The notes: generated by a model from the sequence alone, not told the origin. DNA of 26,798 nt from Cyanophora paradoxa CCMP329 (GCA_004431415.1 QPMI01000381.1:1-26798); one strand, 5' to 3'. Positions 1 to 21,868 are shown, counted from the first letter of the stretch. Numbers and translations are program-made.

Positions 1-3000
1 GGGAGCACGACGTCGTCGTCGCGCACGAGCGGCAGCAGCTCCGCCAGCCGGCCCGCGTCTCCCCGTCCAGCGCCGCTGCCCGCCCCTTGATGTACCCCGT
101 CAGCGCCACCACCGCCTCCGCCGTCAGCCGCGCCGCCGCCATCCCCGCCGCGAGCTCGCGGCAGTACATCGGCAGGGTGAGGTCCTGGGCGCCTCAGAGG
201 GGAGGGGCGGGGGAGGGGGCGGGGCGGGCCTGGACGCGGAGGCGGTCGCGGACGAAGAGGAGCGTCGCCTCCGCGCCCGGGGCCTGCAGCGCCGCCCGCA
301 GCTCTGGGTGCACGAACCGCACGGGCGCCACCGCCTGCCCCGCCACCCTCAGCCGCCCGCCGGGCGCGGCGGGCGGGCAAGGGGCGCACGGCGGCCTCGG
401 GGGGCGCCTGGAGGGCCCCCGCGGGGTCGGCGGCGGGGCCGGCGCCCGGGGCCTCGAGCGGGGGGAAGTAGAGGACGGAGGAGGGGCCGTCGCGGGGCAG
501 GAGTCGGCCCTCGTGGTCGGGGACGGCGTTGAGGGCGCGGGCGGCCTCGGGGGTGAGCCAGGGCTGGGCCTGGAGAAAGCGGTAGAGGCGGGGGAACCAC
601 GCGAGGGGCCGCCCCTCCATCCACGCCGCGTCCTGCAGCGCCTCATACACCTCCAGCGTCGTCACCGCCTGCACCCCGATCGCCACCAGCTGCGCCCGCA
701 CTTCCAGCAGCGCCCGCGCCGCCAGCGGCTGCGCGGCGTCACCGGGGCCGTCGGGGCGGGGCGGGGCGGGGCGGGGCGGGACGGACGGGGTCGGTGAGGG
801 GGGCGGGGAGGGAGCGGTCGGGGATGCCGCCGTCGGCGTCGAGGAGCTCGTAGAGCTCGGCGCTCCCCAGCCGCACCCGCCCCGGCACCTCGTACGCCCC
901 CACCGCCGTCAGCACGCACCGCTCCCCCCGCAGCGCCGCGCAGATCGCCCGCTGCGCGGCGTCGGCCGCCGCGCGCGTGCGGGGGGCGGGGGGCGGCGGG
1001 GGCGCGCCTGGACGGGCTCGAAGAAGGCGTGGTGGACGGGGAGGGGCAGGAAGGGGTAGGCGAGGTGCGCCCGCTCCTTGCCGAAGCGGGCGAGGAGCTT
1101 GAGGAAGGCCCGCACGAAGACGGGGGCGATGCAGTCGCGCAGCCACGCGTTCCACGGCCGGTCGAACACGATCGACTCGCTGCCGAGGCCCCACGTCGCC
1201 CGGCGGGGCGGGGCGGGGGCGGGGCGGGGCGGACCGGGAGGCGGGGAGGACGAAGTCGGCGTTGACGGCGAAGGGCAGGCCGCTGTTGATCTGCCCGCCC
1301 CGCCCCCTTCGCCCCCCGCCTCGCCGCGGGGCCCGGGCGGGGGCACCTTGACGGGGAGCCAGGCGAAGACGGCCCCCGGGATGCGCCGCTTCTTCCCCAG
1401 CGGGATCGCCACGCTCACTGCGCCCCGCACCGTCAGCGGGGCACCCCCCGGGGGGGCGGGGGCGGGGGCGGGCCCTTGCGGAGGACGACGCCGCGGCGCT
1501 TGTCGTCGTCGATCTCGGGGGGCACCTCCACCTCCTGCTCCCACACCCACACCATCTGCGCCCCCTCAGCCCCCGCCTCGCCCCCGCCCCCCCGCCCCCC
1601 GCACCACCCGCTCCTGCTCCTTCTCCTTCTCCGCCGCCGAGGGCGCCCCGGCGCCCCGCGGGCTCCCCGGCTCGGCGTTGGCGGCGGGGCGGGGCGGGGG
1701 CGAGGAGGCGGGCGGGGGGTCCCCCTCCTGGGGCCCCTCCCGGAGCGCTGCCTCGCGCTCCCCCTCGCCCTCCGCCTCCCGCCGCGCCGCCTCCGCCCCT
1801 CCTCCTCCCCCGCGCCCCGCCCGCCTCCCCGCGGGGCCCTCCCGCGGCGCCCGGGGCGGGGAAAGGGCGGGGGCCGGACCAGGAGGGGGCCTCTCGGCCT
1901 TCGAGGAGGGGCTGAGAGCGAGCCGGATGCCGCCTTCTCGGCGGCGCCGCTCCCCGCCGCGCCGAGCGAGGAGAAGGCGCTCGTGCGCCTCCTCGCGCGC
2001 TGGTGCGCCCCGGGGGCGGGGGAAAGGGGCGGGGGCGGGGGAGTGAGCTGGCCGGACGCGGCCCTGCGAGCATCCAAACCAGCGCACCAGCGCGCGAGGA
2101 GGCGCACGAGCGCCTTCTCCTCGCTCGGCGCGGCGGGGAGCGGCGCCGCCGAGAAGGCGGCATCCGGCTCGCTCTCAGCCCCCTCCTCGAAGGCCGAGAG
2201 GCCGAGAGAGAGCCTGGCGGTTGCGCGGGGTCAGCGGCGTGCGCGCCGAGGGGCTCTCCCCCGCTGCACGCGACCTTGCTCGGGAGGTCGCGACGCGGAG
2301 CATCTGGCGCGGGCGTCAGCTGCCTTGCCCCCGCGGAGCCGCACGCGCACCGCACCTCCTTCTCGAGTACGCGCTGGATCCAGGCGTGCCTGCGGTGGCC
2401 GGCCGGGCTTGGCGCGGGGGCGGCGTGCGGGGGGCCGGGGGGCGGACCAGTGGAAGAGGGGTACGCCCTCGCAGACGGCGGCACTATAAAGGGCCGAAAC
2501 GTCGACCTCCTACAATAGTTTGCCCATCAGTTGCAGTAGAAAAAAGCTCGAACAATAATTATACTCACCACGATGTCCTCGTCCCCCGCGGCCACCAGGC
2601 CCAGCTGCCCCCGCCCCGCCCCCCTCACCCTGCGGCCCTTCGCCCCTTCCCGCACCGCCCCCCGCCCACCTGGATCGCCCGCACGAGGAAGTGGAAGAAC
2701 TCCGTCGCGGCGTCTTGCCCGCCCGGCACTGCAGCCGCCGACGCCGCGGGGGCGCCTGCTCCCGCAGCGCCCGCCCGCGCGGCCGCCGCCTCGAGCGACG
2801 CGGCCCGGTTCGCCCGCACGAGCTCGAGGACAAGCCTGGCGGGGGAAGGAGGGGGGGGGGGGGGGGGGGGGGGTGTTTCTCGGAGGGGGCGGAGCGTCGC
2901 TGGGGAGGCGACGGCCGGGGGCGCACCGCGCCATCTGGGCCTGGCGCTCCTGCAGCTGCTCCCTGCTGAGGAGCAGGCGCTCGACCTCCTTGCGGTTTTT

Positions 3001-3755
3001 CTCCGCGTCCTCCAGCTGCCGCTTGCGCGCCGCGCCCGCCTGCCGCCGGCCGTCAGCCTCGCAGGCGCGCCGCGCCCGCGCGCCGACCTCGTATCGCGCC
3101 GCCGCCGCCGCCTCCTGAGCCTGCGCAGAGTCAGAAGTTCGGAAACAGGCGGGATTACGGAGGAGTCCCGAACAAACTTGCCTCCGTGAGAGCGTCGTGT
3201 AAGTCTGGGAGCTGGGCTCGCGTTAGCGGGGAACGAAAGAGGAGCGGGGAGGAGGCGATTACCTCCCGCTCAGCCAGTGTGCGTGCCTGTCGCGCGGGGA
3301 AGCGTCAGTACGGCGAGAGCACCAATCGACAGGTCTCCCCCAAACAAGCATAGCGGCACCTCCCTCCGCCGTAACCTCTCCGCCAGGGAAATGTTCTCAT
3401 CCACGAGCGACTCAATCTGTTTCGCGACGCGCTCTAGCGACGGAGAGCTGCGTTCTAGAACTTGCGAATCGCACCTTGTTCTGCAAGCGTTCGCAGTCTG
3501 CGCGGGATTCCTGTAATTCGATCTCTAGATTGTGCAGACGCTGCGCGAAGCGGGTCAAGCGAGCGGCGCTCCAGAGCGGTGCGGCAGCCACTGTAGCGTA
3601 GCTGTACCGTGCTTAGGAATCGGTTGGAGCCGTCGGGAGGCCAAGACGTTGCAGGCTCTGGATCGTTATCTGGATCCGCAGGCTCTGCGCTGGCAATCAG
3701 AGGGGCGAAGTGCAGGACGCTCTGCAGGCGCACGTCTGCTTTCGTCCAGCGACAT
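1..3755 (-). CDS. Multi-exon NO VEIN/sacsin-like protein with N-terminal coiled-coil region; 3' end outside the window
   Basis: ATG at 3755. Exons joined at GT/GC-AG introns read MSLDESRQPADPDND...RLHNLEIELQESRADCERLQNKIESLVDENISLAERLRRRE (coiled-coil-like) and later VSVAIPLGKKRRIPGAVFAWLPVK/INSGLPFAVNADFVLPASR/ESIVFDRPWNAWLRDCIAPVFV, which resembles the 'VFAFLP..GLxFxxxxDFxLxxSRE...WNxWL' motif recalled from NOV/sacsin-repeat proteins. Continuity across 1850-2200 is uncertain, so this could be two genes. Confidence 0.65.
1888..2203. repeat. Long inverted repeat: arms 1888-2008 and 2082-2203, 73-bp spacer
   Basis: The arms are reverse complements apart from one base in a G-run (4 vs 5 G). 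The same peptides appear on both strands in the ORF track. Confidence 0.95.
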
Positions 3756-3775
3756 CGCTGCGTCGCGGGCTGCGA

Positions 3776-3925
3776 TCAGAGCCTCTACCCCCCGCGGACG
3801 AGATCCCCCAGGCCTCCAAGGAGCGGTGCCGTCCGAAGTTACTCCGAACGTGGGAAGCGCTGCCATCCGCCGAAGAAGCGTTCGGACGAGGCGGGAAGCG
3901 CGGGACGCTCGGTGCGCAACCGACT
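3776..3925 (+). repeat. Left copy of a ~150-bp element, inverted relative to 14913-15083
   Basis: 3776-3827 is identical (52 bp) to the reverse complement of 15032-15083. Similarity continues with indels (cgtgggaagcgct..ccgccgaagaagcgttcggacgaggcgggaag..tcggtgcgc). Confidence 0.92.
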
Positions 3926-4327
3926 GTTAGAAAGTACCTGCTACAAAGCGAGCGCGTTTCACGCCCCGCGTGTGCGTCGATCGCATTGCGTACTGACACG
4001 CTCTGCGACACATTTGCAGATCGATATCGTCCTGGCTGGCCAAGGCCCGCTCCTCGGATCCTCGGATCTCGGATCCTAGGCGTCGGCGTAGCAGCCTATC
4101 TACACCGTCTGTAGTCGTTTGCTATCTCGTAAGCAGCAAAGCAGTCTCCGCCGCCTCGTTTTCTTGGAAGTGAGCTTTGGAGCCCGCAAGCACGGGCTCT
4201 CAGGCGCCTCACGGCTTGTTTGGCCTTGCGCAGCACTTGGGCACATTTGGAGGCTGCTCGAATACACCAAGCCCCTCCAAGGGCTGCGTCTGCCGGCGGA
4301 GAGCGGGGCGACGATTGAAGGGCGAGG

Positions 4328-7300
4328 ATGTCGGAGGAGCTCGCGGATGGGTCGTTCCGGCCACCGTTCAGCCCGGGAACCATGCAAGACGACGTCGTGC
4401 TCCACTCGGCACCCGGCTTCGGAGGTGCCGTCGCAGCGTTCGGCGGGGAGGGCCCCGAGTACGAGCTGCCGAGCTGGATTGACGAGCGGGTGCGGGGGGC
4501 AGGGGGGCGGGGGCGGCGGGGGCGCGGCTGACGTGCGGGGCAGGCGGGGAGCGCGGTGGTAGGGAACGGGAAGGTGGCGGTGTTGCGGGGCGACGGCGAG
4601 GCAGCGCGCCTCCTCCCGGGCTACCACCCCTCCCTCCCCATCCACAGGCCCGACGAGCTCACCGTCCACGGCCCGCCCCGCCCACCCCGTCGGCCTCGCC
4701 CCGCCTGACGCCCCGCAGACCTGCCCGAGGACCCCCGCGAGTGGGGGGCCCCCGTCCTCTTCTCCCGGTGCGGCATTAGCGCCCCTGCCGCGCGGGCGGG
4801 GCGGGGCGGCTGAGGCGGGGCGCAGCGAGGGCTTCCGGGGCGACGCGCACGCCCTGCAGGGCCTCAAAGGTGCGAGCCGCCCGCCCACGCCCCGTGTGGC
4901 GCCGCGCCTCACGGGGGAGGGCGGCAGGGGCGGGCGTGACGGACCTCCCCTCCGCATTCGACGACACCGCCGCCTCCATCGTCGTGCGCGCCCCGCCCGC
5001 CCGCCCCGCGCCCCGCCTCCCCGCACCCCCTCCCCTCCTCACCCGCCCCGCTCCCAGATCCCCACCGGGACCAAGGCGCGTCCTGGTGGGCGCCGCGCCG
5101 TGCCGGGCGGGCGCTCACGCGGCGCCGCAGGTGACCGTCTTCGAGGGCAAGGGAGGCAGCATGCGCGCCCGCACCCTCTTCCCCGGTGCGCCTCCCCGTC
5201 GCGGGCGGCGCTCGAGGCGGCGCGGCTGAGGCGGGGGCCGGCAGGGCGGTACGAGCTCGGGGAGGACCTCGGGGAGGGTGCGGGGCCGGGCGCGCTCGGC
5301 GGGGCGCGGGGCGGGGCTGAGGGGCGGCAGGGGCGCTGGACGGGGCGGTCTCGTCGGTGCTGGTGGAGGGGGACGCGCCGTGCGGGCCGGAGAGCCTGGA
5401 GGAGGCCTTCGCGCTCTACGCCGGCACCGACTTCTTCGGCACCGAGTTCCGCGGCGCCGCCTCCGGCGACCTCCCCCCGTGGATCGCCTCCGACGCCTCC
5501 TCCATCATCGTCCGCCCCCCGCCCCGCCCCGCGCCCCCGCCCCGCCCCGCCGTCCGGCTGACCTCCCCCGCCGCAGGTCGCCAACAACAAGCGCGTCATC
5601 CTGCACGCAGCGCCCGGCGCTCCCGAGGGGACCGAGTCACAGGAAGCCAAGACGCTCACGCTCCTGCCCGGGTGAGGGAGCTCGCCGGGGGCGGCGCGGG
5701 GCGGGACACCGAGGCTGCCTGGGGCAGGTTCCACCGGGCGCTGCCGCCGGAGTTCCAGGACGCGGCGGCGCGGGTCGTGGTGGAGGAGCTGCCGCCCGAC
5801 GTCACCTCCTGGGGCGTCCCCGTCCTCTGCGAGGGGTACCGCTCCCCGCACGCCCCGCGGCCCCCTTCCTCACCCCCTCCGGCCCCGCAGCGAGGGCCTC
5901 CGGGGGGCCCAGACGGCGCTGCCGAGGAGCGTGGCGCCCCTGGGGGAGGTCTTCAACCTGCCGCCGCACGCCGCGCACTCGATCTCCTCCCTCGCCGTCC
6001 CCGCCGGCTTCCAGGTGAGCCCCGCCGGTTGGGAGCCGCCGTAACGGCCGGCGGCCTCACGCGAGACCGGCCCGGCAGGTGACGCTCTTCTCGGAGAGGC
6101 GGGGCGGGGGCGAGGCGCGCACCTTCGGGCCGGGGAGCCACGAGCTGCGCGACCTCAGCGACGTGGCGCAGAGCTTCCTCGTCGAGGGTGCGCCCCGCCG
6201 CCCCCCCCCCCCCCCCCCCCCCCCCCCGCCCCCGTCCCCGTCGCCCCCTCAGCCTCCCGCAGCCCTGCGCCCGGAGCCGGAGCCGCGGGATGAAGAGCGG
6301 GAGCCGGCGGCGGAAGCGCCGCGCGGCACGGGACCGACCAGCCGCCTGTTTGCGGCCTTTCGGGCGCTCGACGGGGCCGGGGCCGGAGAGGCGGAGATGC
6401 GCGCCGCGGTGCGCGACTACCTCGACGACGCCACCGAGGAGCTGCGCGCCGCCGCCCGCTCCCTGCCGCCGCCTCCGGAGCCGGCCCCGGAGGCTCCGCC
6501 TGCGGATGAGCCGGCGACGGAGGCGGCGGGCGGTGAAGCGGGGTGGACGAGCGACGCTGTGGAGGCGCTGGTGGAGGCGTATCGCGCGGGGGCGGCGAAG
6601 GAGGAGCTCATCTCTGCCGCCTCGCGCGCCATCGTCGACTACCTCACCGCCGCCGGCGTCGCCGACCCCGACCCCGTGCGCCCCGCCGCCCGGCCCTCGC
6701 CAGCGCGGCGCTGACGAGGAGGGGGCGGCAGGGATGGCACGATGCGGAGGCGGGGCAGCTGGTGCGCTTTGTGCGGGCCGTGGCGGGCAGCCTGGACGAC
6801 AAGGGCCTCGCCACCGTCGCCCGCCTCTTCATCGCCGAGACCGTCCACGTCGACGCCGCCGGCGACGCCGCCCCAGCCGACCCCCCGCCCCCTGTTGACC
6901 CCGCACCGGCGAGCGACGATACTGAAGCTGAGCAAGACGACGCCGACCACGGCTTCTCCGACGCTGCTGCGAGCACGGGCGAAGCCGGACCCGCCGCGGA
7001 TCTGCTTGCGACCTTCCGCGCGGTTGCGGAGGGGAGGGCGTCGGAGGACGATTTCCGTGCGACAGCGAAGGCGTTCCTCGACAAGACCGTCGGGCCGCTT
7101 CAGTCGGTGCGTGGGTGTACATGTCGTGCGCTGCCACGCGAATTCCCGTCAGTGACTGTACCGCAGGGCTCGCGGGAGTCCCCATCAACGGAACTGACAG
7201 CGGAGTCGGACTCGGGGGCACCATCGGAGTCGTCGGCGGTGTCGGAATCGGCCCTGGATGACCTGCTCGCGAAGTTCCGGGCGCTGGACGCGGACGGGGC

Positions 7301-10300
7301 GAGCGCGGAGGCGTTCCACGCCGCAGCGGAGTCGTTCATTCAAAGCGTCACGTCTCGCTTGCAACGGGCGGCTGCGCACAACGATGACAGCAGCAAGGAC
7401 ACGGCTGTCGAGGGCGACCAAGAAGCGACCATCCAAGATTCTTCCTCTTCCAGCGCGGACGAAGCCGGACCCGCCGCGGATCTGCTTGCGACCTTCCGCG
7501 CGGTTGCGGAGGGGAGGGCGTCGGAGGACGATTTCCGTGCGACAGCGAAGGCGTTCCTCGACAAGACCGTCGGGCCGCTTCAGTCGGTGCGTGGGTGTAC
7601 ATGTCGTGCGCTGCCACGCGAATTCCCGTCAGTGACTGTGCCGCAGGGCTCGCGGGAGTCCCCGTCAACGGAATTGACAGCGGAGTCGGACTCGGGGTCA
7701 CCATCGGAGTCGTCGGCGGTGTCGGAATCGGCCCTGGATGACCTGCTCGCGAAGTTCCGGGCGCTGGACGCGGACGGGGCGAGCGCGGAGGCGTTCCACG
7801 CCGCAGCGGAGTCGTTCATTCAAAGCGTCACGTCTCGCTTGCAACGGGCGGCTGCGCACAACGATGACAGCAGCAAGGACACGGATGTCGAGGGCGACCA
7901 AGAAGCGACCATCCAAGATTCTTCCTCTTCCAGCGCGGACGAAGCCGGACCCGCCGCGGATCTGCTTGCGACCTTCCGCGCGGTTGCGGAGGGGAGGGCG
8001 TCGGAGGACGATTTCCGTGCGACAGCGAAGGCGTTCCTCGACAAGACCGTCGGGCCGCTTCAGTCGGTGCGTGGGTGTACATGTCGTGCGCTGCCATGCG
8101 AATTCCCGTCAGTGACTGTGCCGCAGGGCTCGCGGGAGTCCCCGTCAACGGAACTGACAGCGGAGTCGGACTCGGGGTCACCATCGGAGTCGTCGGCGGT
8201 GTCGGAATCGGCCCTGGATGACCTGCTCGCGAAGTTCCGGGCGCTGGACGCGGACGGGGCGAGCGCGGAGGCGTTCCACGCCGCAGCGGAGTCGTTCATT
8301 CAAAGCGTCACGTCTCGCTTGCAACGGGCGGCTGCGCACAACGATGACAGCAGCAAGGACACGGCTGTCGAGGGCGACCAAGAAGCGACCATCCAAGATT
8401 CTTCCTCTTCCAGCGCGGACGAAGCCGGACCCGCCGCGGATCTGCTTGCGACCTTCCGCGCGGTTGCGGAGGGGAGGGCGTCGGAGGACGATTTCCGTGC
8501 GACAGCGAAGGCGTTCCTCGACAAGACCGTCGGGCCGCTTCAGTCGGTGCGTGGGTGTCGTGCGCTGCCATGCGAATCCCCGTCAGTGACTGTGCCGCAG
8601 GGTTCGCGGGAGTCCCCGTCAACGGAACTGACAGCGGAGTCGGACTCGGGGGCACCATCGGAGTCGTCGGCGGTGTCGGAATCGGCCCTGGATGACCTGC
8701 TCGCGAAGTTCCGGGCGCTGGACGCGGACGGGGCGAGCGCGGAGGCGTTCCACGCCGCAGCGGAGTCGTTCATTCAAAGCGTCACGTCTCGCTTGCAACG
8801 GGCGGCTGCGCACAACGATGACAGCAGCAAGGACACGGATGTCGAGGGCGACCAAGAAGCGACCATCCAAGATTCTTCCTCTTCCAGCGCGGACGAAGCC
8901 GGACCCGCCGCGGATCTGCTTGCGACCTTCCGCGCGGTTGCGGAGGGGAGGGCGTCGGAGGACGATTTCCGTGCGACAGCGAAGGCGTTCCTCGACAAGA
9001 CCGTCGGGCCGCTTCAGTCGGTGCGTGGGTGTACATGTCGTGCGCTGCCACGCGAATTCCCGTCAGTGACTGTACCGCAGGGCTCGCGGGAGTCCCCATC
9101 AACGGAACTGACAGCGGAGTCGGACTCGGGGGCACCATCGGAGTCGTCGGCGGTGTCGGAGTCGGCCCTGGATGACCTGCTCGCGAAGTTCCGGGCGCTG
9201 GACGCGGACGGGGCGAGCGCGGAGGCGTTCCACGCCGCAGCGGAGTCGTTCGTTGCCTTGATTGCCTGGAGGCTGATGCACGCGTCGGCTGCGGCTGCCA
9301 ATCTCGCCGACAAGACAGAAACTAAGCACACCGTCTCACAATCTGCAGAGGACGAGGTTTGCGTGAGCAGTGTTACGATCTTGTGCGTTGGCCGCCCGCT
9401 GATGCGCCGGCATTGCAGATTTCGGAGGCGAGCGCACTAGTGGAGGAAGCGGAAAAAAAGGCGGAGGCGCTGAACGAAGCGGCGAACGAGGCGGCGCTTC
9501 TCGAGCGCGAAGCCGACGAGCTTGCAGAGCGCGCTGCCGAGGCGGAGACGGCAGAAGAGCAGCAGGAGCTCGCGGCGGCTGCCGAGCGAGCGGCGGAGGC
9601 GGCGGAGGAGAAGGCGGATGAGGCGCGGGATCTGGCGGAGGTCGTGGAGAGCCTGTCAGAAAAGGTGGAGAGCCTGGCGGAGGCGATTGGCGAGATGGAG
9701 CAGGCGGCAGGGAGCTCAGAGCTCGCCGAACTCGCAGAAACGGCCAGCACTCTGCAGGAGGAGGCTGCCGAAGAGCAGAGGCGCGCGGAGGAGAGCGCGA
9801 GGGATGCCGCCGACGCCTCGGAGCAGTCCGAGCAGCCACAGGAGGGTACCGACTCGAGCAGCGAAGAGCCCTATGATGGCGAGGACGTCGAGACGTCAGG
9901 CGAGAACGTTGAGACGTCAGGCGCAGACGAGGCCACCGGCGATGCGGAGGAGGCAATAGCTAAGGGCGACGTGAGTAGCACAAGCGACGCCACGGGCGAT
10001 GCGAGCAGCACTGGCGAGGACACCGAGGCTACTGGAGACGCCGAGAACGACTCCGCTGACCACCATCCCCCCTCGGAAGAAAACACGACAGCCTCCGATC
10101 TGCTTGCGACCTTCCGCGCGGTTGCGGAGGGGAGGGCGTCGGAGGACGATTTCCGTGCGACGGCGAAGGCGTTCCTCGACAAGACCGTCGGGCCGCTTCA
10201 GTCGGTGCGTGGGTGTCGTGCGCTGCCATGCGAATTCCCGTCAGTGACTGTGCCGCAGGGCTCGCGGGAGTCCCCGTCAACGGAACTGACAGCGGAGTCG

Positions 10301-11932
10301 GACTCGGGGGCACCATCGGAGTCGTCGGCGGTGTCGGAATCGGCCCTGGATGACCTGCTCGCGAAGTTCCGGGCGCTGGACGCGGACGGGGCGAGCGCGG
10401 AGGCGTTCCACGCCGCAGCGGAGTCGTTCATTCAAAGCGTCACGTCTCGCTTGCAACGGGCGGCTGCGCACAACGATGACAGCAGCAAGGACACGGATGT
10501 CGAGGGCGACCAAGAAGCGACCATCCAAGATTCTTCCTCTTCCAGCGCGGGCGACAGCCCAAGCGACGCCAGCGGCGATGCCGAGAGCTCTGGCGAAGCA
10601 CCGGGCGAAGCAGAGAGCTCCGGCGACGCCAGCGGCGATGCCGAGAACTCTGGCGAAGCACCGGGCGAAGCAGAGAGCTCCGGCGACGCCAGCGGCGATG
10701 CCGAGAGCTCTGGCGAAGCACCGGGCGAAGCAGAGAGCTCCGGCGACGCCAGCGGCGATGCCGAGAGCTCTGGCGAAGCACCGGGCGAAGCAGAGAGCTC
10801 CGGCGACGCCAGCGGCGATGCCGAGAGCTCTGGCGAAGCACCGGGCGAAGCAGAGAGCTCCGGCGACGCCAGCGGCGATGCCGAGAGCTCTGGCGAAACA
10901 CCGGGCGAAGCAGAGAGCTCCGGCGACGCCAGCGGCGATGCCGAGAGCTCTGGCGAAGCACCGGGCGAAGCAGAGAGCTCCGGCGACGCCAGCGGCGATG
11001 CCGAGAGCTCTGGCGAAGCTTCGGGCGAAGCAGAGAGCTCCGGCGACGCCAGCGGCGATGCCGAGAGCTCTGGCGAAGCTTCGGGCGAAGCAGAGAGCTC
11101 CGGCGACGCCAGCGGCGATGCCGAGAGCTCTGGCGAAACACCGGGCGAAGCAGAGAGCTCCGGCGACGCCAGCGGCGATGCCGAGAGCTCTGGCGAAGCA
11201 CCGGGCGAAGCAGAGAGCTCCGGCGACGCCAGCGGCGATGCCGAGAGCTCTGGCGAAGCACCGGGCGAAGCAGAGAGCTCCGGCGACGCCAGCGGCGATG
11301 CCGAGAGCTCTGGCGACGCTGCGGGCGATGCGTCCAGCACGAGTGCGAGCAGAGGCTTGGATCCGGCAGTGGCGGAGGCGAAAGCAGCAGCAGACCTGGA
11401 AGCGCTGGCGGCGATCTGCGCGTTGCGGGGGAAGGCGGCGGGGGAGGGGGACGAGTCGTTCGTGGGGAGCCTCACCAAGGTCCTCGTCTCGGACAAGCTC
11501 GTCGCCGCCGGCTTCGTGCGCCCGCCCGCCCCGCACCCGCCCCCGCACCGCGCCGCCCGCGCCCGCGCCCCGTCCCGCCTCTGACGCGGGGCGGGGCAGT
11601 CGGTGCCGGAGGCGCTGCCGGTGCTCGAGGGGAGCGCGGGGGCGCTGCGGGAGCGGATCCTGGGGAGCATGTGCGAGATGGAGGCGGCGCGCCTGGAGGA
11701 GAACGGGCCCGTCCTCGACGAGTTCGAGGGGGCCCTCGCCGGCCTCTACGCCCTCGCCCTCCGCGCCGGCACCGAGCCCGACGCCGAGCCCGAAGCCGCC
11801 TCCGAGACCGCCTCGGAGCTCGACGGCGGCGAGGCGGCGGCCTTCGTCGAGGAGCCCGACGCGAGCGGCCTCGAGGCCGAGGCCGCCGAGGCCCCCGACG
11901 GCCCCGACCCCTTCGACATGCCCCTCTGCTAG
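4328..11932 (+). CDS. Giant multi-exon protein: four beta/gamma-crystallin-like domains, tandem acidic helical repeats, Gly/Asp/Ser/Glu-rich repeat and a C-terminal helical domain
   Basis: Spliced 4328-6187 gives Greek-key-like units, e.g. PVLFSREGFRG..DLPSAFDDTAASIVIPTGTKVTVFEG..LFPGRYEL..LDGAVSSVLVE; ALYAGTDFFG..ASDASSIIVANNKRVILH; AHSISSLAVPAGFQVTLFSE..GEARTFGPGSHELRDLSDVAQSFLVE. Introns 9357-9418 and 11516-11599 join the long ORFs. Stop TAG at 11930-11932. The start codon is uncertain. Confidence 0.8.
6981..9251 (+). repeat. 480-bp coding tandem repeat, about 4.7 copies (units start 6981, 7461, 7941, 8421 [474 bp], 8895 [partial])
   Basis: Near-identical units are visible directly. Each encodes two related helical motifs and carries a probable 60- or 54-bp intron. 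Confidence 0.97.
10097..10550 (+). repeat. Detached sixth copy of the 480-bp unit
   Basis: gatctgcttgcgacc...tccagcgcgg matches the array and has the 6-bp-shorter intron variant of unit 4. Confidence 0.95.
10563..11330 (+). repeat. 60-bp coding minisatellite, about 12.7 copies, encoding GDASGDAESSGEAPGEAESS
   Basis: Successive 60-base lines are near-identical. The unit consists of two related 30-bp halves. Confidence 0.97.
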
Positions 11933-12306
11933 CAGCCCCCGCGCCCCGCTGCCCGCGACCCTTTTCTCGCCCCCGCCCCCTCGCGAGGTCTACCTTCACA
12001 GCAGTAATTCCGACTCTCACCTCAGGGCCTCTACTTAAGTAACTACTTTTTTTGAACGTAGACGTGGCTGCTACGAACGCAAACGACATTCACTGCAGAG
12101 ATAGCTCTGCACATGGTCGTGGCTGTGCGCGGCCATGGGACTATCTTTGTCCGGGCGTCCCCTAAAGCACGCGGATCGGTGTCCCGGACGGCTCGTTGCA
12201 GGAGCGCTAGCAGCGGGCATATCGCTCGCGTCGCGTTCTCGCATGCGTTGCCAGGCCAAAAAAAGCGGAGCCGGGGTACATAGGAGAAAAGGGGGGAGGA
12301 AGAAAG

Positions 12307-14793
12307 CTACGCCCAGGGGAGGGGGAGGAGGGCGTCGGCGCAGGCGTCAAGGCCGTGCTCCGCGCCGGCGATGTCGGCCTCGGGGCCCTCCCCGAACTCG
12401 ATCTCGACGACCGCCTCCGCCTCCGCCTCCGCCTCGCCGGCCCCGCCGCCGGCCGGCCCCAGCGCCGCCTGCACCGCTTCCTGCGCCCCCGCCCCGTCCG
12501 CCAGCGCCGGGCGGCCGCGCGCGCCCCGGGCAAGCGCGCACGGCGTCGGCGATGGCGTGCTGGGCGGCGGCGGCGACCTCGTCGCGGGAGAGGCCGCGCG
12601 CGCAGGCCTCGAGCTCCTGGGGGGCAGTGAGGCGGGGCGGCGCGGGCTGCGGGGCGGCGGGCGGGGCGGACGCGGAGCTGCTCGAGGAGGGCGGCGAGCT
12701 GCTGGCCGCTCCAGGGGTCCACCTCGGCCCCCCCGCCCGCCAGCGCCCGCACCGCCTCGTACTTGCGCAGCTGCTCCACCCGCCCCGCCAGCTCCCCCAC
12801 CCGCCCCTCCGTCACCTCCTCCTCCCCCAAACTGCACACAGCCGCCCTCGCCCCCGCCCCGCTCGCCCCCGCCTCCGCCTCCTCGGACGCTGCCGCCTCC
12901 TCCGAGCCGGGGCCGGGGCCGGGGTGCGGGGAGAGGGAGGCGGGCCCGGAGGCTTCCGAGGATGCGGGCCCCGAGGGCTCGGCGGAGGCGGGCCCGGCGG
13001 GGTCGGAGGGGGCGGGGTCGGGGCGGGCGTCGAGGAAGGCGCGGTGCCAGCTCGCCGCGAGCGCCTCCTCCAGCGCCCCCAGCATCGCCGTACCCTCCGC
13101 GCTCTCCGGGGCCCCCCGCAGCCCGCACATCGCCCCCAGGAGGCTGTCCCGCAGGGGCGCGCCGGCGAGGGTCCCGGGGTCGAGGTCCCTGGCGCCCCCG
13201 CCGGCGCCGTAGTAGCGGGCGTCGAGCAGGACGCCTGCGGGCGGGTCACGCAGGGGCGGGTGAGGCGGAGGGGCCGGGGCGCGCACCGAGGGCGAGGCCC
13301 AGCGAGGCCGCCTCCTCGCCGGCCCCCGCACCGGCCCCCGCAGCCCGCACAGCGCCTCCTCCAGCCGCCCGCTCAGCTCCGCCGCCCTCGCCGCCTTCCC
13401 CTCCTCCCCTCCGCCTCCGCCCCCGCCCCGCCTCCTCGCCCCGCTGCCCGCCTCCTCGCCCCCGCCGCCCGACGCCGGAGACTCGTCGCTCGATGCCGGC
13501 GCCTCGGCGTCTCCGCGGGACGCCTCCGGCGCTTCCTCGCCCGATGCTGCCGCCTCGTCGCCGGCGCCCGGCGCCCCCTCTCCGGGCTGGCGGGGGCCGG
13601 CGGGGCGCTGCGGAGGGCGCGGAGCGGGGCGGTGGCGTCGTCGAGGAAGGCGCGGGCGGCGGCGCGGAGCTCGGCCTCGCCGCCCCCGCCCCGTCCAGCA
13701 GCCGGAACGCCGCCAGCAGCTCCGACGCCTCCGCAGCCTCGCCCCCCGCCGCCCCCTGCGCCCCCTCCGCACCGTCAGCGGCGCCGGGGCGGGGCCGGGG
13801 GCGGGGGCGGGGCGGGGGCGCACGGAGAGGGGGGCGGTGACGGCGGAGAGGAAGGCGCGCGCCTCCGCCTCGAACGTCGCCTCGCCCTCGCCCCCCGGCC
13901 CCACCCCTCGGAACGCCGCCAGCAGCCGCCCCTCCCTGTCCAGCCCCCGCTCTGCTGCAGCCTCACCCGACGGCTCGGCCGGCGGCTCGGTCGGCGGCTC
14001 TGCCGGTGGCTCGGCCGGTGGCTCGGTCGGCGGCTCTGCCGCTGGCTCGGCCGGTGGCTCTGCCGGTGGCTCGGCCGGTGGCTCTGCCGGTGGCTCGGCC
14101 GGTGGCTCGGCCGGTGGCTCGGCCGGTGGCTCGGCCGGTGGCTCGGCCGGTGGCTCGGCCGGTGGCTCTGACGGTGGCTCGGCCGGTGGCTCTGACGGCG
14201 GCTCGGGCGGGGTCTCGGGCGGGGCGTCGGGGGCGGGGAGGGGGCGGGAGAGACGGTGCGCGAGGGGCGCGGTGGCGTGGTCGAGGAAGGCGGCGGAGGC
14301 GTCGCGGAAGGCCGCCTGGCTCGCCTCGTCTTCCGTCAACGCTCGGAAGCGCTCCAGCAGCGCCTCCAGCCCGCCCGCGCCCCCGGCCCCCTCCTCCCCG
14401 TCCTCCCGGGCCCCGCCCTCGAGCTGCCGCTCCCCGTCGGGGCCGCCCCTCGCGCTCGCCCCGGCGGCCTCGCTGAGGGCCGCCGTGCCGCAGAGCTCCT
14501 CCTGCACGAGGGCGGCGATGACGGGGGCGGCGGCCGCGCGGTACGCGGCCTCGTCCTCCACACCGCCCGCCTTCAGCTCACCCCACTTCTCCAGCAGCTC
14601 CTCCGTCGCCTCGCCCCGCCTCCGCTCGACCTGCATGCGCCGCCTCGTGACCCGCCGCCACGCCGGCCCCGCGCGACACTCGAACCTCATTCCGTACGGA
14701 TGCTTCCAAGTATGATCGGCTCTGCTCCCGGAGGCCGGACGTGTCGCCCGAGAGAAAGAGCCTAAGCAGGCCTTCGAGCTCGGCGTCCGCCAT
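12307..14793 (-). CDS. Multi-exon acidic helical-repeat protein, diverged paralog of the repeat/C-terminal part of 4328-11932
   Basis: ATG at 14793 (MADAELEGLLRLFLSGD...). Motifs LLERFRAL..FRDASAAFLDHATAPL, LLAAFRGV..FEAEARAFLSAVTAPL and LLAAFRLL..LRAAARAFLDDATAPL; LRDSLLGAMCGL matches LRERILGSMCEM in the partner. Stop at 12307-12309. Apparent 1-bp frameshifts lie in G/C runs near 13590-13690. Confidence 0.72.
13965..14204 (-). repeat. 12-bp coding minisatellite, 20 units, encoding (EPPA/S/T)n
   Basis: Tandem ggtggctcggcc-type units, in frame within the minus-strand gene. Confidence 0.95.
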
Positions 14794-14912
14794 GGCGCCC
14801 GATTTCGGTCCGGTTGCTCTCTGCAATAACAGCAACGCCACGGAGTCAAATGCGTGTGCGGCGCATCTCGCCGAGTGAACAACACTCTAAGAGCTGGCTG
14901 TGTTGCGCGGTC

Positions 14913-15083
14913 TGGCCGGTCGCGCACCGACGGTCCTGCACTTCCCGCCGCCTCGTCTGAACGCTTCTTCGGCGGCTGAGAGCGCCTCCCACGTCTCGTC
15001 GGAGTGTGCTAGCTGCGCGGTCTCGGACGGTACCGCTCCTTGGAGGCCTGGGGGATCTCGTCCGCGGGGGGTAGAGGCTCTGA
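14913..15083 (-). repeat. Right copy of the ~150-170-bp element
   Basis: Reverse complement aligns with 3776-3925. It lies ~120 bp upstream of ATG 14793. Confidence 0.92.
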
Positions 15084-15279: not shown

Positions 15280-15412
15280 GCGCCCCAGCTCGAGCTCACG
15301 TGAATTCTTACTGAGCTACTAGTAGCCTACTACTACTGAGCTTACTGAATTCGTAAATTGTCTTGATCTCGAGATCAAATCCTGCCTGTGCACGTGATTG
15401 TGCACGTGACCT
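15280..15412. other. Palindrome-dense intergenic patch with three CACGTG boxes
   Basis: agctcgagct at 15287, gctactagtagc, ttgatctcgagatcaa at 15363-15378; CACGTG at 15297, 15391 and 15403. Confidence 0.6.
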
Positions 15413-15926: not shown

Positions 15927-17471
15927 TCAGAAGTGGAGGTCCTTGACGGCGTTGAACATGACTGGGTGGAGCTTGTAGAAGAGAAGAACGAAGGCGGTGG
16001 TGCCGACGTACTGAATGGCTACTTAGAAGGCGGTGGGAGAGACGGCGGACGGGGCGCGCGAACCGCGGGGCGCAGGAACTCCTTGAGGACGAGGCGGTTG
16101 CGGCCCTCGAGGATGGCCTGGAAGGGGAGCACCGAGGTCCGCGCCGCCACCTCCTCGAACGCCTCCCCGAAGCGCTCCCGCAGCCGCTTGTCCCCGTGCC
16201 ACACCGCGAAGATGTGGTGCGCCATCAGCCCGAACGACGTCACCAGCGTGAACGACGACCCGATCCACAGGCTGTGCGCCAGGCACCAGATCCTGCCCGC
16301 CCCGCCCCGCGTCGGCGCGGCGGCGGCGGGGCGAGGGGGCGGGGGGCGGGGCGGCGGGGCGGGGGTGCGGGGGTGGGCGGACCCCTGGCCGACCATCTGG
16401 GGGTGGCGGGTGATGCGGATGATGCCCTCCTCGTAGAGCCGCACCTGCGGCTTGTTGATCGCCGCCACCTCCGCCAGGTTCTGCCCCGCGTCGGCCCCGC
16501 GCGGCGCTGCGGCGGGGCGGGGCGGGGCGGGGCGGACGAAGGTGGCGGGGTAGAGGAAGATGAAGGAGAGGGCGGAGAGGAAGCAGACGAACTCGCGCAT
16601 GCCGGGGATGCCCTGCAGCTGCCAGAGCTGGACCCCGTCGTAGCGGTGCACCAGGAAGTACGTGATCAGCGCCCCCGCCATCGGGAGGCTGAACAACGCG
16701 AACAGGACCCGGTACGCTGCCCCCGCGTCAAGCCGGCGCGGCGCCGGCGCGTGGCGCGGAGGGGAGGGGAGGGGGGGAGGGGGGGGGGGGGGGGGGGGGG
16801 CACCGCGGGCGCCCATCCAGGCCTCGCCGCGGGGCCGGAGGGCGGCGAGGCCGCTGTGGCCCGTGGCGAAGGCGAGGTTCAGCGCCAGCATCCGCACCTG
16901 CCCCGCTTCTTGTCAGTCCCCGCCGCGCCCGCATCGCCCCGGCGGCGTACGTGGCTATCCTGCAAGAATGCCGAGCCTGCAAGCGCGCCCTCAACGGTCC
17001 CGCCGTACCGCACCCCGGCCGCGGCGTAGCGCACCCTGCTCTCCAGCCGCAGAGATGAGCAGCGCACCGCCGAGAAGAACCGACGGGACAGCCAGTGTCG
17101 CGTTCTTCGCCCAGCTTGGGATCGGCTCCTTCACCTGCGAGCCGACGATTCGTGGGCGATAGTCGCGGGCGCTCCCTCGGAGCGTGCAGGCTCACCGCCT
17201 TCTCAACCTCCTCGATCGTCCGCTCGCGCTTCGGCGTCGTCGGTTGCTTCGCCTTGCACAGCCACTGCGGGTCCGCGTGCCGCCGACCGGCCACACGCGT
17301 GCAAGGCCGGTCCATGCTCACGTCGAAGGAACGTTTAGAGATGGGGAACAAGGCGAGCGGCCTCCTGAGCGCCCGCGCTCCGTGCTGACTCTGCGTGCAC
17401 GCTGCGCTCGCCGCCGCCGCGCCTGGCCGAGATCCTACTCCTTCCCATGCAGCCGCGGCAGCAACGAACAT
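15927..17471 (-). CDS. Z-ISO: 15-cis-zeta-carotene isomerase (NnrU family), plastid-targeted, multi-exon
   Basis: Recognised motifs: FATGHSGLAALR, AYRVLFALFSLP, HRYDGVQLW, FLYPATFNLAEVAAINKP, GIIRITRHPQMVGQ, IWCLAHSLWIG, HHIFAVWHGDKRL, TSVLPFQAILEGR. Last exon YVGTTAF..LHPVMFNAVKDLHF* (stop 15927-15929). N-terminal Ala/Ser/Arg-rich presequence. Confidence 0.93.
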
Positions 17472-20210: not shown

Positions 20211-21868
20211 TCACCTGGACGGGGAGGCGGCGCGGGGGGCGGGTGAGGAGAGGCCGCGGCGGCCGGGGAGGGGCGGGGAGGGGGAGCGGGCGCCATCGAG
20301 GCGGGAGGCGGGGCGTGCGGCGGGGTCGGGCTCGGCGGGGGCCCCCGGGCGCTTGCCGATGTGGAGCGCCTTTGTGAGCATCCTCAGGAAAGGGGGGTTC
20401 CCGACCTGGCGACGAGGAGGCGACGATCATGAGGGGCGATGCGCGGGGCGGCGGGGCTGCGGGGCGGGTGCGGGGAGCGGGGCGGGGCGGGCGGGGCGGG
20501 CACCCCCTCGTACATGACGTCCGCCACGCTCACCTTCCCGTCCGAGTTCGAGTCCGCGTACACGACTGGCCCCGCCCCCCGCCTCACCGCGGCGCCCCGG
20601 CCCGGGGCGGGGCGGGGGGCGGGGCGGGGCGGACTGATCTCGCCGGCCTGGCGGTCGGCCTCGTGGAGGAAGTGCTTGATGGTGCGGGAGTAGGGGGAGA
20701 TCTGCTGGAGGAAGAGCTCCTTGAGCTCCTCCTTGGTGGCGAGGCCGGAGGGGAGCTTGGCGAAGATGGCGTGCAGCTCGGCCTGCACCTCCCCGTGCAG
20801 CAGCGCCGCCATCCCCAGCCGCAGCTCCTGCAGCCGCACCGCCGACGCCCCCGGCGTCTTCAGGAAGCGCTGCCCCCGCGTCACGCCCCGGGGGGCAGGG
20901 GACGGGACGGGGGGCGCGCGAAGAACTCGGGGGCGAAGTCGTCGCGGGAGATGCCGCAGGCGTCGAGGAAGCGGACCATCGCGGGGAAGGTCAGCCGCCC
21001 CGTCGAGTCCGCGTGCTGCCGGAACTCTGCCCCCGTCTCAGCCTCGCCCCGAGCTGGCCCAAACGACTCGCAGGCCTCTAAATGACGCATGTCGCATGCT
21101 TCATACGAGTGCGCCCCCCGCCCCGCCCCGCCCCGCCCCGCCGCGGGGCGCGCACCCTTCTCGATCTCCGCGAAGTCGAGGCGCTTTAGGCGCTGGGCGA
21201 CCTGCCGCAGGGCTCGCCGGGGCGCGGGCGGGGGGGGGGGGGGGGGAGGGGGGGAGGGGGGGAGGGGGGGGAGGGGGGCCCGCCCCTCGGCGGGGGCGCA
21301 CGCGGGTCATCTGGAAGCGGCGATAGATCTCGAGGCTGTGGCTCTTGGCCGTCGTGCGCATCTCCTCGCGCCCCATGCGCGGCCTCATCTCCCGCAGCTC
21401 CGGCCTCAGGCTCCGGTCCTCCAAGCTCCGCACAACCTGCCGCCCCGCCGTCCGCCCTCCCCCGTCCGCCGCGCGAGAGACGCGAGGGGCACCTTCCTCA
21501 GGTAGCTTCGCTTCTCCAGCGCCCCGAGGTACGAGGGCCGGGGCTTGAAATAGTCGTCCTCCACCACCTGTGGCTGCGGAAGCTCGGGAGCGCTGACGCT
21601 CGGCGCCAGCGTCCGCGAGGTCGCGGACGGCGCCAGGCTGCGGTGCGTCGTGGCGCCCTCAAGGTGCCGCATGCTCTTCGACGGCGACAGGGTTGCGGCT
21701 GTGGTTGACCGCGTCAGCGCCGGGGCGGCCGCGTGCGCATGGGATGCTGTCCTCTCCAACCGCACTGTCCTCGTCTTCTGCAACGGGGGAACTGCTGGGC
21801 GTCAGCTCAAAAGACCGCCAACGTCAGCGAAGGCGGGGCGCACGGCTAGAGAACGATTCGCGCTCCAT
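20211..21868 (-). CDS. EF-hand protein (neuronal calcium sensor/calcineurin B-like C-terminus) with basic disordered N-terminus
   Basis: ATG at 21868. ADSTGRLTFPAM, LQELRLGMAALLHGEVQAELHAIF, ADSNSDGKVSVADVMYEGVGNPPFLRML (EF loop DxNxDGxVSxxD). Stop at 20211-20213. Confidence 0.78.

Follow-up and report, generated by a model that had tools for sequence, protein, structure and literature searches.

The two arms of an inverted repeat in the glaucophyte alga Cyanophora paradoxa CCMP329 are probably homologous 5' modules of two ancient paralogous genes, A and B, created by an inverted duplication and kept by selection for a shared promoter and messenger RNA (mRNA) leader, possibly with the help of gene conversion. 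The repeat lies in a stretch of 26,798 nucleotides (GCA_004431415.1 QPMI01000381.1:1-26798), called the window here, and its arms stand upstream of, and co-oriented with, two convergent genes (ATG at 4328 in gene A and at 14793 in gene B), a layout already described in an earlier reading of this DNA made from the sequence alone (the sequence-only reading). The repeat has two genomic copies, it is bounded by a transcription start site (TSS) region and a splice donor, and RNA contigs of gene A are spliced within the 5' untranslated region (UTR) and have their 5' ends inside the left arm. Selection as the cause of the identity between the arms is what we infer.

Extent and copy number of the repeat

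Nucleotides 3776-3827 are the exact reverse complement of 15032-15083 (52/52), and shuffles of the window gave no match to this block even with three mismatches allowed. We scored the homology of individual segments by alignment against dinucleotide shuffles (z-scores). From the outer end inward, 60 of 61 positions are identical between 3776-3836 and 15083-15023 (z=22.7); a 17-20-nucleotide zone of insertions and deletions (indels) follows, and then a stretch with two indels in which 64 of 75 aligned bases agree, up to 3911 in the left arm and 14928 in the right. The rest of the first exon of gene A (3837-3911) scores z=17.4 against the right arm. BLASTN delimits the whole homologous unit as 3776-3922 against 15083-14917, with 80.8% identity over 167 columns, close to the inverted copies with identical outer 52 bp that the sequence-only reading had put at 3776-3925 and 14913-15083.

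Arm-to-arm alignment is at shuffle level for the 116 nucleotides outside the block (z 0.1), for intron 1 (z 0.4) and for the start of exon 2 (z 0.7). A candidate outward extension of the homology, to a CCAAT-like box (CAATCAG) common to both sides and a remnant of the neighbouring gene's ATG, was dropped at the same z of 0.1 against shuffles. At the inner edge, both arms carry the canonical donor CG/GTGCGC (the slash marks the exon-intron junction, at 3911/3912 on the left and 14928/14927 on the right), followed by about five further shared bases. The limits of the homologous unit are thus functional landmarks, the TSS region and the splice donor, and not breakpoints at arbitrary positions. 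Apart from this unit, the two halves of the locus have no high-identity match; the remaining matches, at about 60%, represent noise from guanine-plus-cytosine (GC) composition together with a coding repeat shared by the two genes. A metagenome scan with a 45-nucleotide core of the block came back blank. The elements of the repeat are as follows.

3776..3827, plus strand: left 52-nucleotide block; holds the inferred 5' end of gene A mRNA and probably also that of the divergent left neighbour
3776..3922, plus strand: left arm, whole unit; the block, the rest of exon 1, the splice donor and about 11 nucleotides of intron
14917..15083, minus strand: right arm, whole unit, upstream of gene B; 52-nucleotide block at 15032-15083, predicted donor at 14928/14927

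The number of copies in the genome can be read from sequencing depth. In DNA run X1, the 52-nucleotide unitig corresponding to the block (3776-3827) has a depth of 172.3, while the unique contigs on either side, each with an overlap of k-1 bases, reach 85.9 (2900-3805) and 78.8 (3798-4552). The block is therefore about twice as deep as its flanks, as expected for two copies genome-wide, namely the two arms, and the duplication is not an assembly artefact; run X1 may be the assembly's own source and does not represent a second strain. Neither a matching search nor BLASTN found a third copy of the block within the window, and the DNA depth leaves no room for a dispersed family of copies, which speaks against the mobility that the sequence-only reading had raised.

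The leader of gene A and its predicted counterpart in gene B

Contigs of run X1 and of three spliced RNA runs were placed on the window between 2900 and 6900. Two of the RNA runs, X15 and X17, stem from two studies and carry no label beyond 'RNA?'; that they are spliced RNA follows from their contigs, which lack 4170-4233 and 4489-4542, with exact GT..AG boundaries. Each run yields one contig over 4019-4169, 4234-4488 and 4543-4669, with further bases before 4019 (95 in X15 and 96 in X17), that is, 96-97 nucleotides upstream of exon 2. In both runs, multiplying the contig depth by 87/134 gives the depth of the bin 3972-4105 (6.1 and 3.63). Exon 2 alone accounts for this depth, so that 3972-4018 is intronic, with the acceptor AG at 4018-4019. 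The placed piece begins at G4019, one nucleotide before the exon start defined by this AG, as it should if G is the last base of the upstream exon. The conserved donor at 3911/3912 is the sole G/GT within 3838-3971, which puts the 5' ends of the contigs at 3816 (X15) and 3815 (X17).

On the combined grounds of the donor, the one-nucleotide overlap and the depth arithmetic, we place exon 1 at 3815-3911. The left arm is then the 5' end of the mature gene A mRNA, spliced to the downstream exons in both X15 and X17. The contig ends lie inside the 52-nucleotide block, 17-18 nucleotides short of the branch limit at 3798, at which a k=31 graph is bound to break and the DNA contig indeed starts; they therefore mark the end of RNA coverage rather than a graph artefact, and the start site of gene A would lie at or slightly upstream of 3815. 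The 5' UTR exons contain no ATG before 4328.

3815..3911, plus strand: non-coding exon 1 of gene A, probable placement; 96-97 nucleotides in RNA contigs, donor CTCG/GTGCGC at 3911/3912
3912..4019, plus strand: 5' UTR intron 1 of gene A, 108 nucleotides; no RNA cover in 3972-4018
4020..4169, plus strand: non-coding exon 2 of gene A, supported by RNA
4170-4233, plus strand: intron 2 of gene A (5' UTR), from spliced RNA
4234-4488, plus strand: exon 3 of gene A, carrying the first ATG (4328)
4328..11932, plus strand: coding region of gene A, matching the EukProt model; stop at 11930-11932
12307..14793, minus strand: coding region of gene B, our own gene model; ATG at 14793, stop at 12309-12307
14927-14821, minus strand: predicted 5' UTR intron of gene B, 107 nucleotides, by homology and the acceptor TTGCAG ending at 14821
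from 14820, minus strand: predicted exon 2 of gene B, with the ATG 28 nucleotides later

The leader exons of gene A and of its divergent left neighbour (3734-3827) and the two 5' UTR introns of gene A (3912-4019 and 4170-4233) had gone unannotated because the published annotation of C. paradoxa did not predict UTRs (PMC6704402). A separate, abundant contig present in all three RNA runs matches the window from 3895 on and ends before 3972. Before 3895 it consists of unrelated sequence ending in ...GGTTACATGCGTTGA, absent from the window, with no splice signal at the junction; in the bin of this match, the DNA depth is elevated too. Probably, a highly expressed transcript that originates elsewhere matches the window by chance over a short stretch.

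Gene A corresponds to the EukProt entry EP00741 Cyanophora paradoxa tig00001629_g9518.t2/.t1 (2092/2094 amino acids), which maps exon by exon to 4328-11932 with 14 coding introns of 48-75 nucleotides. A profile-free search with one exon against 1.84 billion cluster representatives returned only the gene's own entry, and one gene A exon found no match in a protein-database search; as far as its sequence tells, the product is an orphan protein. It has many short N-terminal exons and helical repeats of the LLAxFRAL type, with 12 internal repeat matches. At the DNA level the gene contains about 25 repeats of 30 bp and six of 480 bp, and the 97-99% identity among the latter indicates that homogenisation has recently been active within the gene.

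Gene B is predicted to use the right arm as gene A uses the left. Its predicted leader contains no ATG before 14793, and its predicted intron 1 contains one. The 5' UTR introns of A and B, at 108 and a predicted 107 nucleotides, are nearly equal in length and locally unusual next to the coding introns of gene A, and they have saturated sequence, which suggests an old duplication of the entire 5' region, after which exon 1 with its start region alone remained similar. The coding regions share less. Gene B has three helical repeat units, 12-bp repeats encoding (EPPA)n and a C-terminal motif in common with gene A (E 0.003), and a motif of about 35-40 amino acids (LLAAFRxLDG...EAE.RAA.R.FLDDAT) is identical between the two at 17 of 40 positions (E 7e-5) and at 75% over 100 nucleotides of DNA. 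The N-terminal coding exons are unrelated. A and B are, as these motifs have it, distant paralogs, in agreement with the repeat family that the sequence-only reading had seen in the two tail-to-tail genes. Its argument that the block is no passive relic of the duplication also holds, given the saturation of intron and flanks and a protein identity that reaches no more than 43% over 40 amino acids.

Pfam searches with pieces of both genes and with the EukProt model of gene A found no domain, exon 3 of gene B had no match in protein databases, and a search with the gene B open reading frame returned only low-complexity EPPA-like matches (kintoun and others) that are meaningless. In gene B, the helical repeat unit with the best conservation changes reading frame near 13690 (frame 0 to 2) and again near 13575 (frame 2 to 1). 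These breaks look like one nucleotide missing twice, in G/C runs, and may be long-read homopolymer assembly errors or real frameshifts; in the assembly, the frame remains open, and a 52-nucleotide intron leads it back to the downstream exon. The 374 bases between the stop codons of A and B contain nothing gene-like on reading alone.

Explanations for the conserved arms

In the explanation that we consider probable, an ancient inverted duplication would have produced genes A and B, each with a module composed of a core promoter or transcription start region, a non-coding exon 1 and a splice donor. The neutral surroundings (the upstream flank, 5' UTR intron 1 and most coding DNA) would since have diverged to randomness, while in the module the identity would have been kept at 85-100% by the continued reliance of A and B on one and the same start site and mRNA leader. 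Expression of the two genes would then be coordinated at the level of transcription, and probably of translation as well. The left block would also form the core of a compact bidirectional promoter shared with the divergent neighbour, and occasional arm-to-arm gene conversion may help to keep the outermost 52 bp identical. A promoter and leader exon shared by paralogs is an ordinary kind of feature, of which the core is here unusually perfect. Like other conserved 5' modules of paralogs that combine a promoter with a non-coding first exon, the arms are co-oriented with each paralog, span the TSS, the leader exon and the donor, are conserved far better than the coding sequence, and exist in two copies only. 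They differ in the degree of conservation, 52/52 next to saturated introns and flanks, and in that one copy appears to double as a bidirectional promoter core.

Several points weigh against this explanation. The first 95-96 nucleotides of the RNA contigs came without a listed placement, so that the position of exon 1 is one that we infer, and the role of the right arm in gene B is a prediction from homology. Perfect identity over 52 bp exceeds typical promoter constraint. With a single genome, selection and arm-to-arm conversion are inseparable. Genes of C. paradoxa have about nine introns each, with a mean length of 86 bp (PMC6704402), and relative to this mean the match between 107 and 108 nucleotides is suggestive only. 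If the frame breaks in gene B are real, selection on its promoter becomes harder to argue and conversion gains.

Conversion could in principle account for the arms without any function: relics of the duplication would have been homogenised by a recent arm-to-arm event of about 50-60 bp, with older events further in. The sharp outer edge and the tract-like run of 52/52 and then 8/9 identical bases fit this account, as do the recombinational activity of the locus (the 480-bp repeats at 97-99% identity and the 30-bp and 12-bp arrays) and the possible frameshifting of gene B. However, selection is favoured over conversion alone because the conserved unit matches the functional unit, from TSS region to donor, which conversion by itself does not predict, and because conversion needs preserved homology: with the flanks saturated, something must have kept 150 bp alike. 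The inner 75 nucleotides, at 85% identity with indels, resemble constrained divergence. We therefore regard a conversion tract without function as unlikely; conversion may instead add to selection. Large palindromes, such as those of sex chromosomes, undergo gene conversion between their arms, and the repeat resembles them in having inverted arms around a spacer, with intrachromosomal conversion as a candidate for upholding the identity; it differs in that only about 150 bp of the arms have escaped decay and that two diverged genes lie in the 11-kb 'spacer'.

Two more speculative ideas, which we rate together as quite improbable, give the identical blocks a further consequence. Kept identical by arm-to-arm conversion, they could be a recombination substrate that flips the 11.3-kb segment between them; alternatively, the invariant first bases of the leader could be an RNA-level regulon tag of the orphan pair. 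A flip, if it occurs, would swap the upstream regions of A and B, the bidirectional left flank for a right flank with three CACGTG boxes. Short-read k-mers of k=31 are blind to such an inversion, the 52-nucleotide block being longer than k.

It is also very doubtful that the module was captured recently, that is, that ectopic repair or template switching placed a copy of about 150 bp of promoter and exon 1 from one gene in front of the other when the two had long since diverged. Homology limited to about 150 bp between random flanks, and N-terminal coding exons that are unrelated, would be expected from such an event. Yet the 5' UTR introns that follow the module directly, at 108 and 107 nucleotides where introns are locally 48-75, point to shared ancestry of the whole 5' region, and the arms already differ by 15%, and by indels, in the inner part of the module.

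Still less credible is a layout that the sequence-only reading had listed among three possibilities for the cassette, in which the arms are terminal inverted repeats (TIRs) of a cargo element of the MuDR/Pack-MULE kind; the form considered here is a single-copy transposon, MULE- or hAT-like, carrying both genes. The arms do share with MuDR and Pack-MULEs a geometry of long inverted ends that each precede a gene reading inward, and the arm sequence starts with CAGAG, which we take to resemble a hAT terminus. What distinguishes them is that the ends are leader exons with splice donors at their inner edge and that the left one is transcribed as the 5' end of gene A mRNA. There are two copies in the genome, which excludes a partner elsewhere with the same ends, and no family of repeats. 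No target-site duplication (TSD) is present, the 8-bp flanks for a hAT-type end being GCTGCGAT (left) and AGCCTCAA (right), and identical ends are inconsistent with a wholly decayed TSD. The window contains no transposase, and the cassette holds only the convergent genes A and B, each free of Pfam domains. The TIRs of cut-and-paste transposons (MULE/Pack-MULE, hAT) were rejected as candidates on these grounds; the sequence-only reading had itself seen neither a transposase nor a TSD. Its alternative of a shared regulatory or non-coding RNA module stands in its regulatory part, as core promoter and TSS, non-coding exon 1 and donor. By contrast, two copies of a small structured non-coding RNA gene, one upstream of each gene, would fit the high conservation of non-coding sequence but are scarcely plausible, as the arms match no Rfam family, whether at E<=1 or at the gathering threshold, fold no better than shuffles (z +0.6 to +1.4), and are joined by RNA contigs, on the left, to the exons of gene A.

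Neighbouring genes and meaning for Cyanophora

Genes on both sides of the repeat bear on which genes the arms can serve.

3734..3767, minus strand: first exon of the divergent left neighbour, ATG at 3754; its RNA contig starts 9 nucleotides from the block
15930-17470, minus strand: right neighbour, encoding a membrane protein of the NnrU family (PF07298, E 1e-11); tandem to gene B, 3' end towards the arm

An RNA contig shows the left neighbour spliced from 3767-3734 to 3684-3608 and 3540-3487. In X15, the bin 3704-3837 holds 714 depth-bases, which, after subtraction of the gene A contig over 22 nucleotides, leave about 61 nucleotides at the neighbour's depth of 8.32. This suggests that the neighbour's 5' end is at about 3794, inside the block, and hence that the left block is the core of a compact bidirectional promoter. 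The first exons of the neighbour and of gene A start a few tens of bases apart on opposite strands, as in other bidirectional promoters with closely spaced divergent starts, but the right copy has no divergent partner gene. The right neighbour, presumably similar to the plant 15-cis-zeta-carotene isomerase (Z-ISO), is in tandem rather than divergent, so the right arm can serve gene B only. The idea that the block is a promoter of outward-reading genes in general was therefore confined to the left side, the right flank being the tandem NnrU gene with no outward coding gene on reading.

Three CACGTG boxes and an unusual, AT-richer stretch containing short repeats, direct as well as inverted (ACTGAGCT, GAATTC), lie at 15296-15410, about 210-330 bp upstream of the right arm, and have no counterpart at the left arm. 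Inside the left neighbour gene is a perfect inverted repeat of 101 nucleotides (1908-2008 and 2082-2182, with a 73-nucleotide spacer), one arm of which reads as a coding exon and the other as its exact reverse complement; such a structure may have arisen by true foldback duplication or be an artefact of long-read assembly. The genome was assembled from PacBio reads with Illumina correction and has 67.6% GC (PMC6704402). The window is very rich in GC (65-85%) and has many short GT..AG introns that are often C/G-rich, and homopolymer runs of 20-30 C or G occur within introns at 6196-6230, 16770-16800, 21228-21245 and 2850-2875. Short-read contigs break at 6187-6256, and introns with such homopolymers are likely sites of assembly and length errors. 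A scan for bacterial promoters and terminators was set aside, the host being a eukaryote, and a literature search found nothing specific on Cyanophora promoters or UTRs.

For the annotation of this genome, the analysis removes a tempting false positive, the supposed cargo transposon with MuDR-like ends, and shows that an annotation without UTRs hides non-coding first exons and 5' UTR introns. For the biology of the alga, the arms are among the few concrete candidate core-promoter and leader sequences in a glaucophyte, with 52 bp invariant where neutral DNA is saturated and with one copy probably serving two divergent genes, and the 52-bp block offers a usable start for promoter work in an organism with almost no defined regulatory elements.

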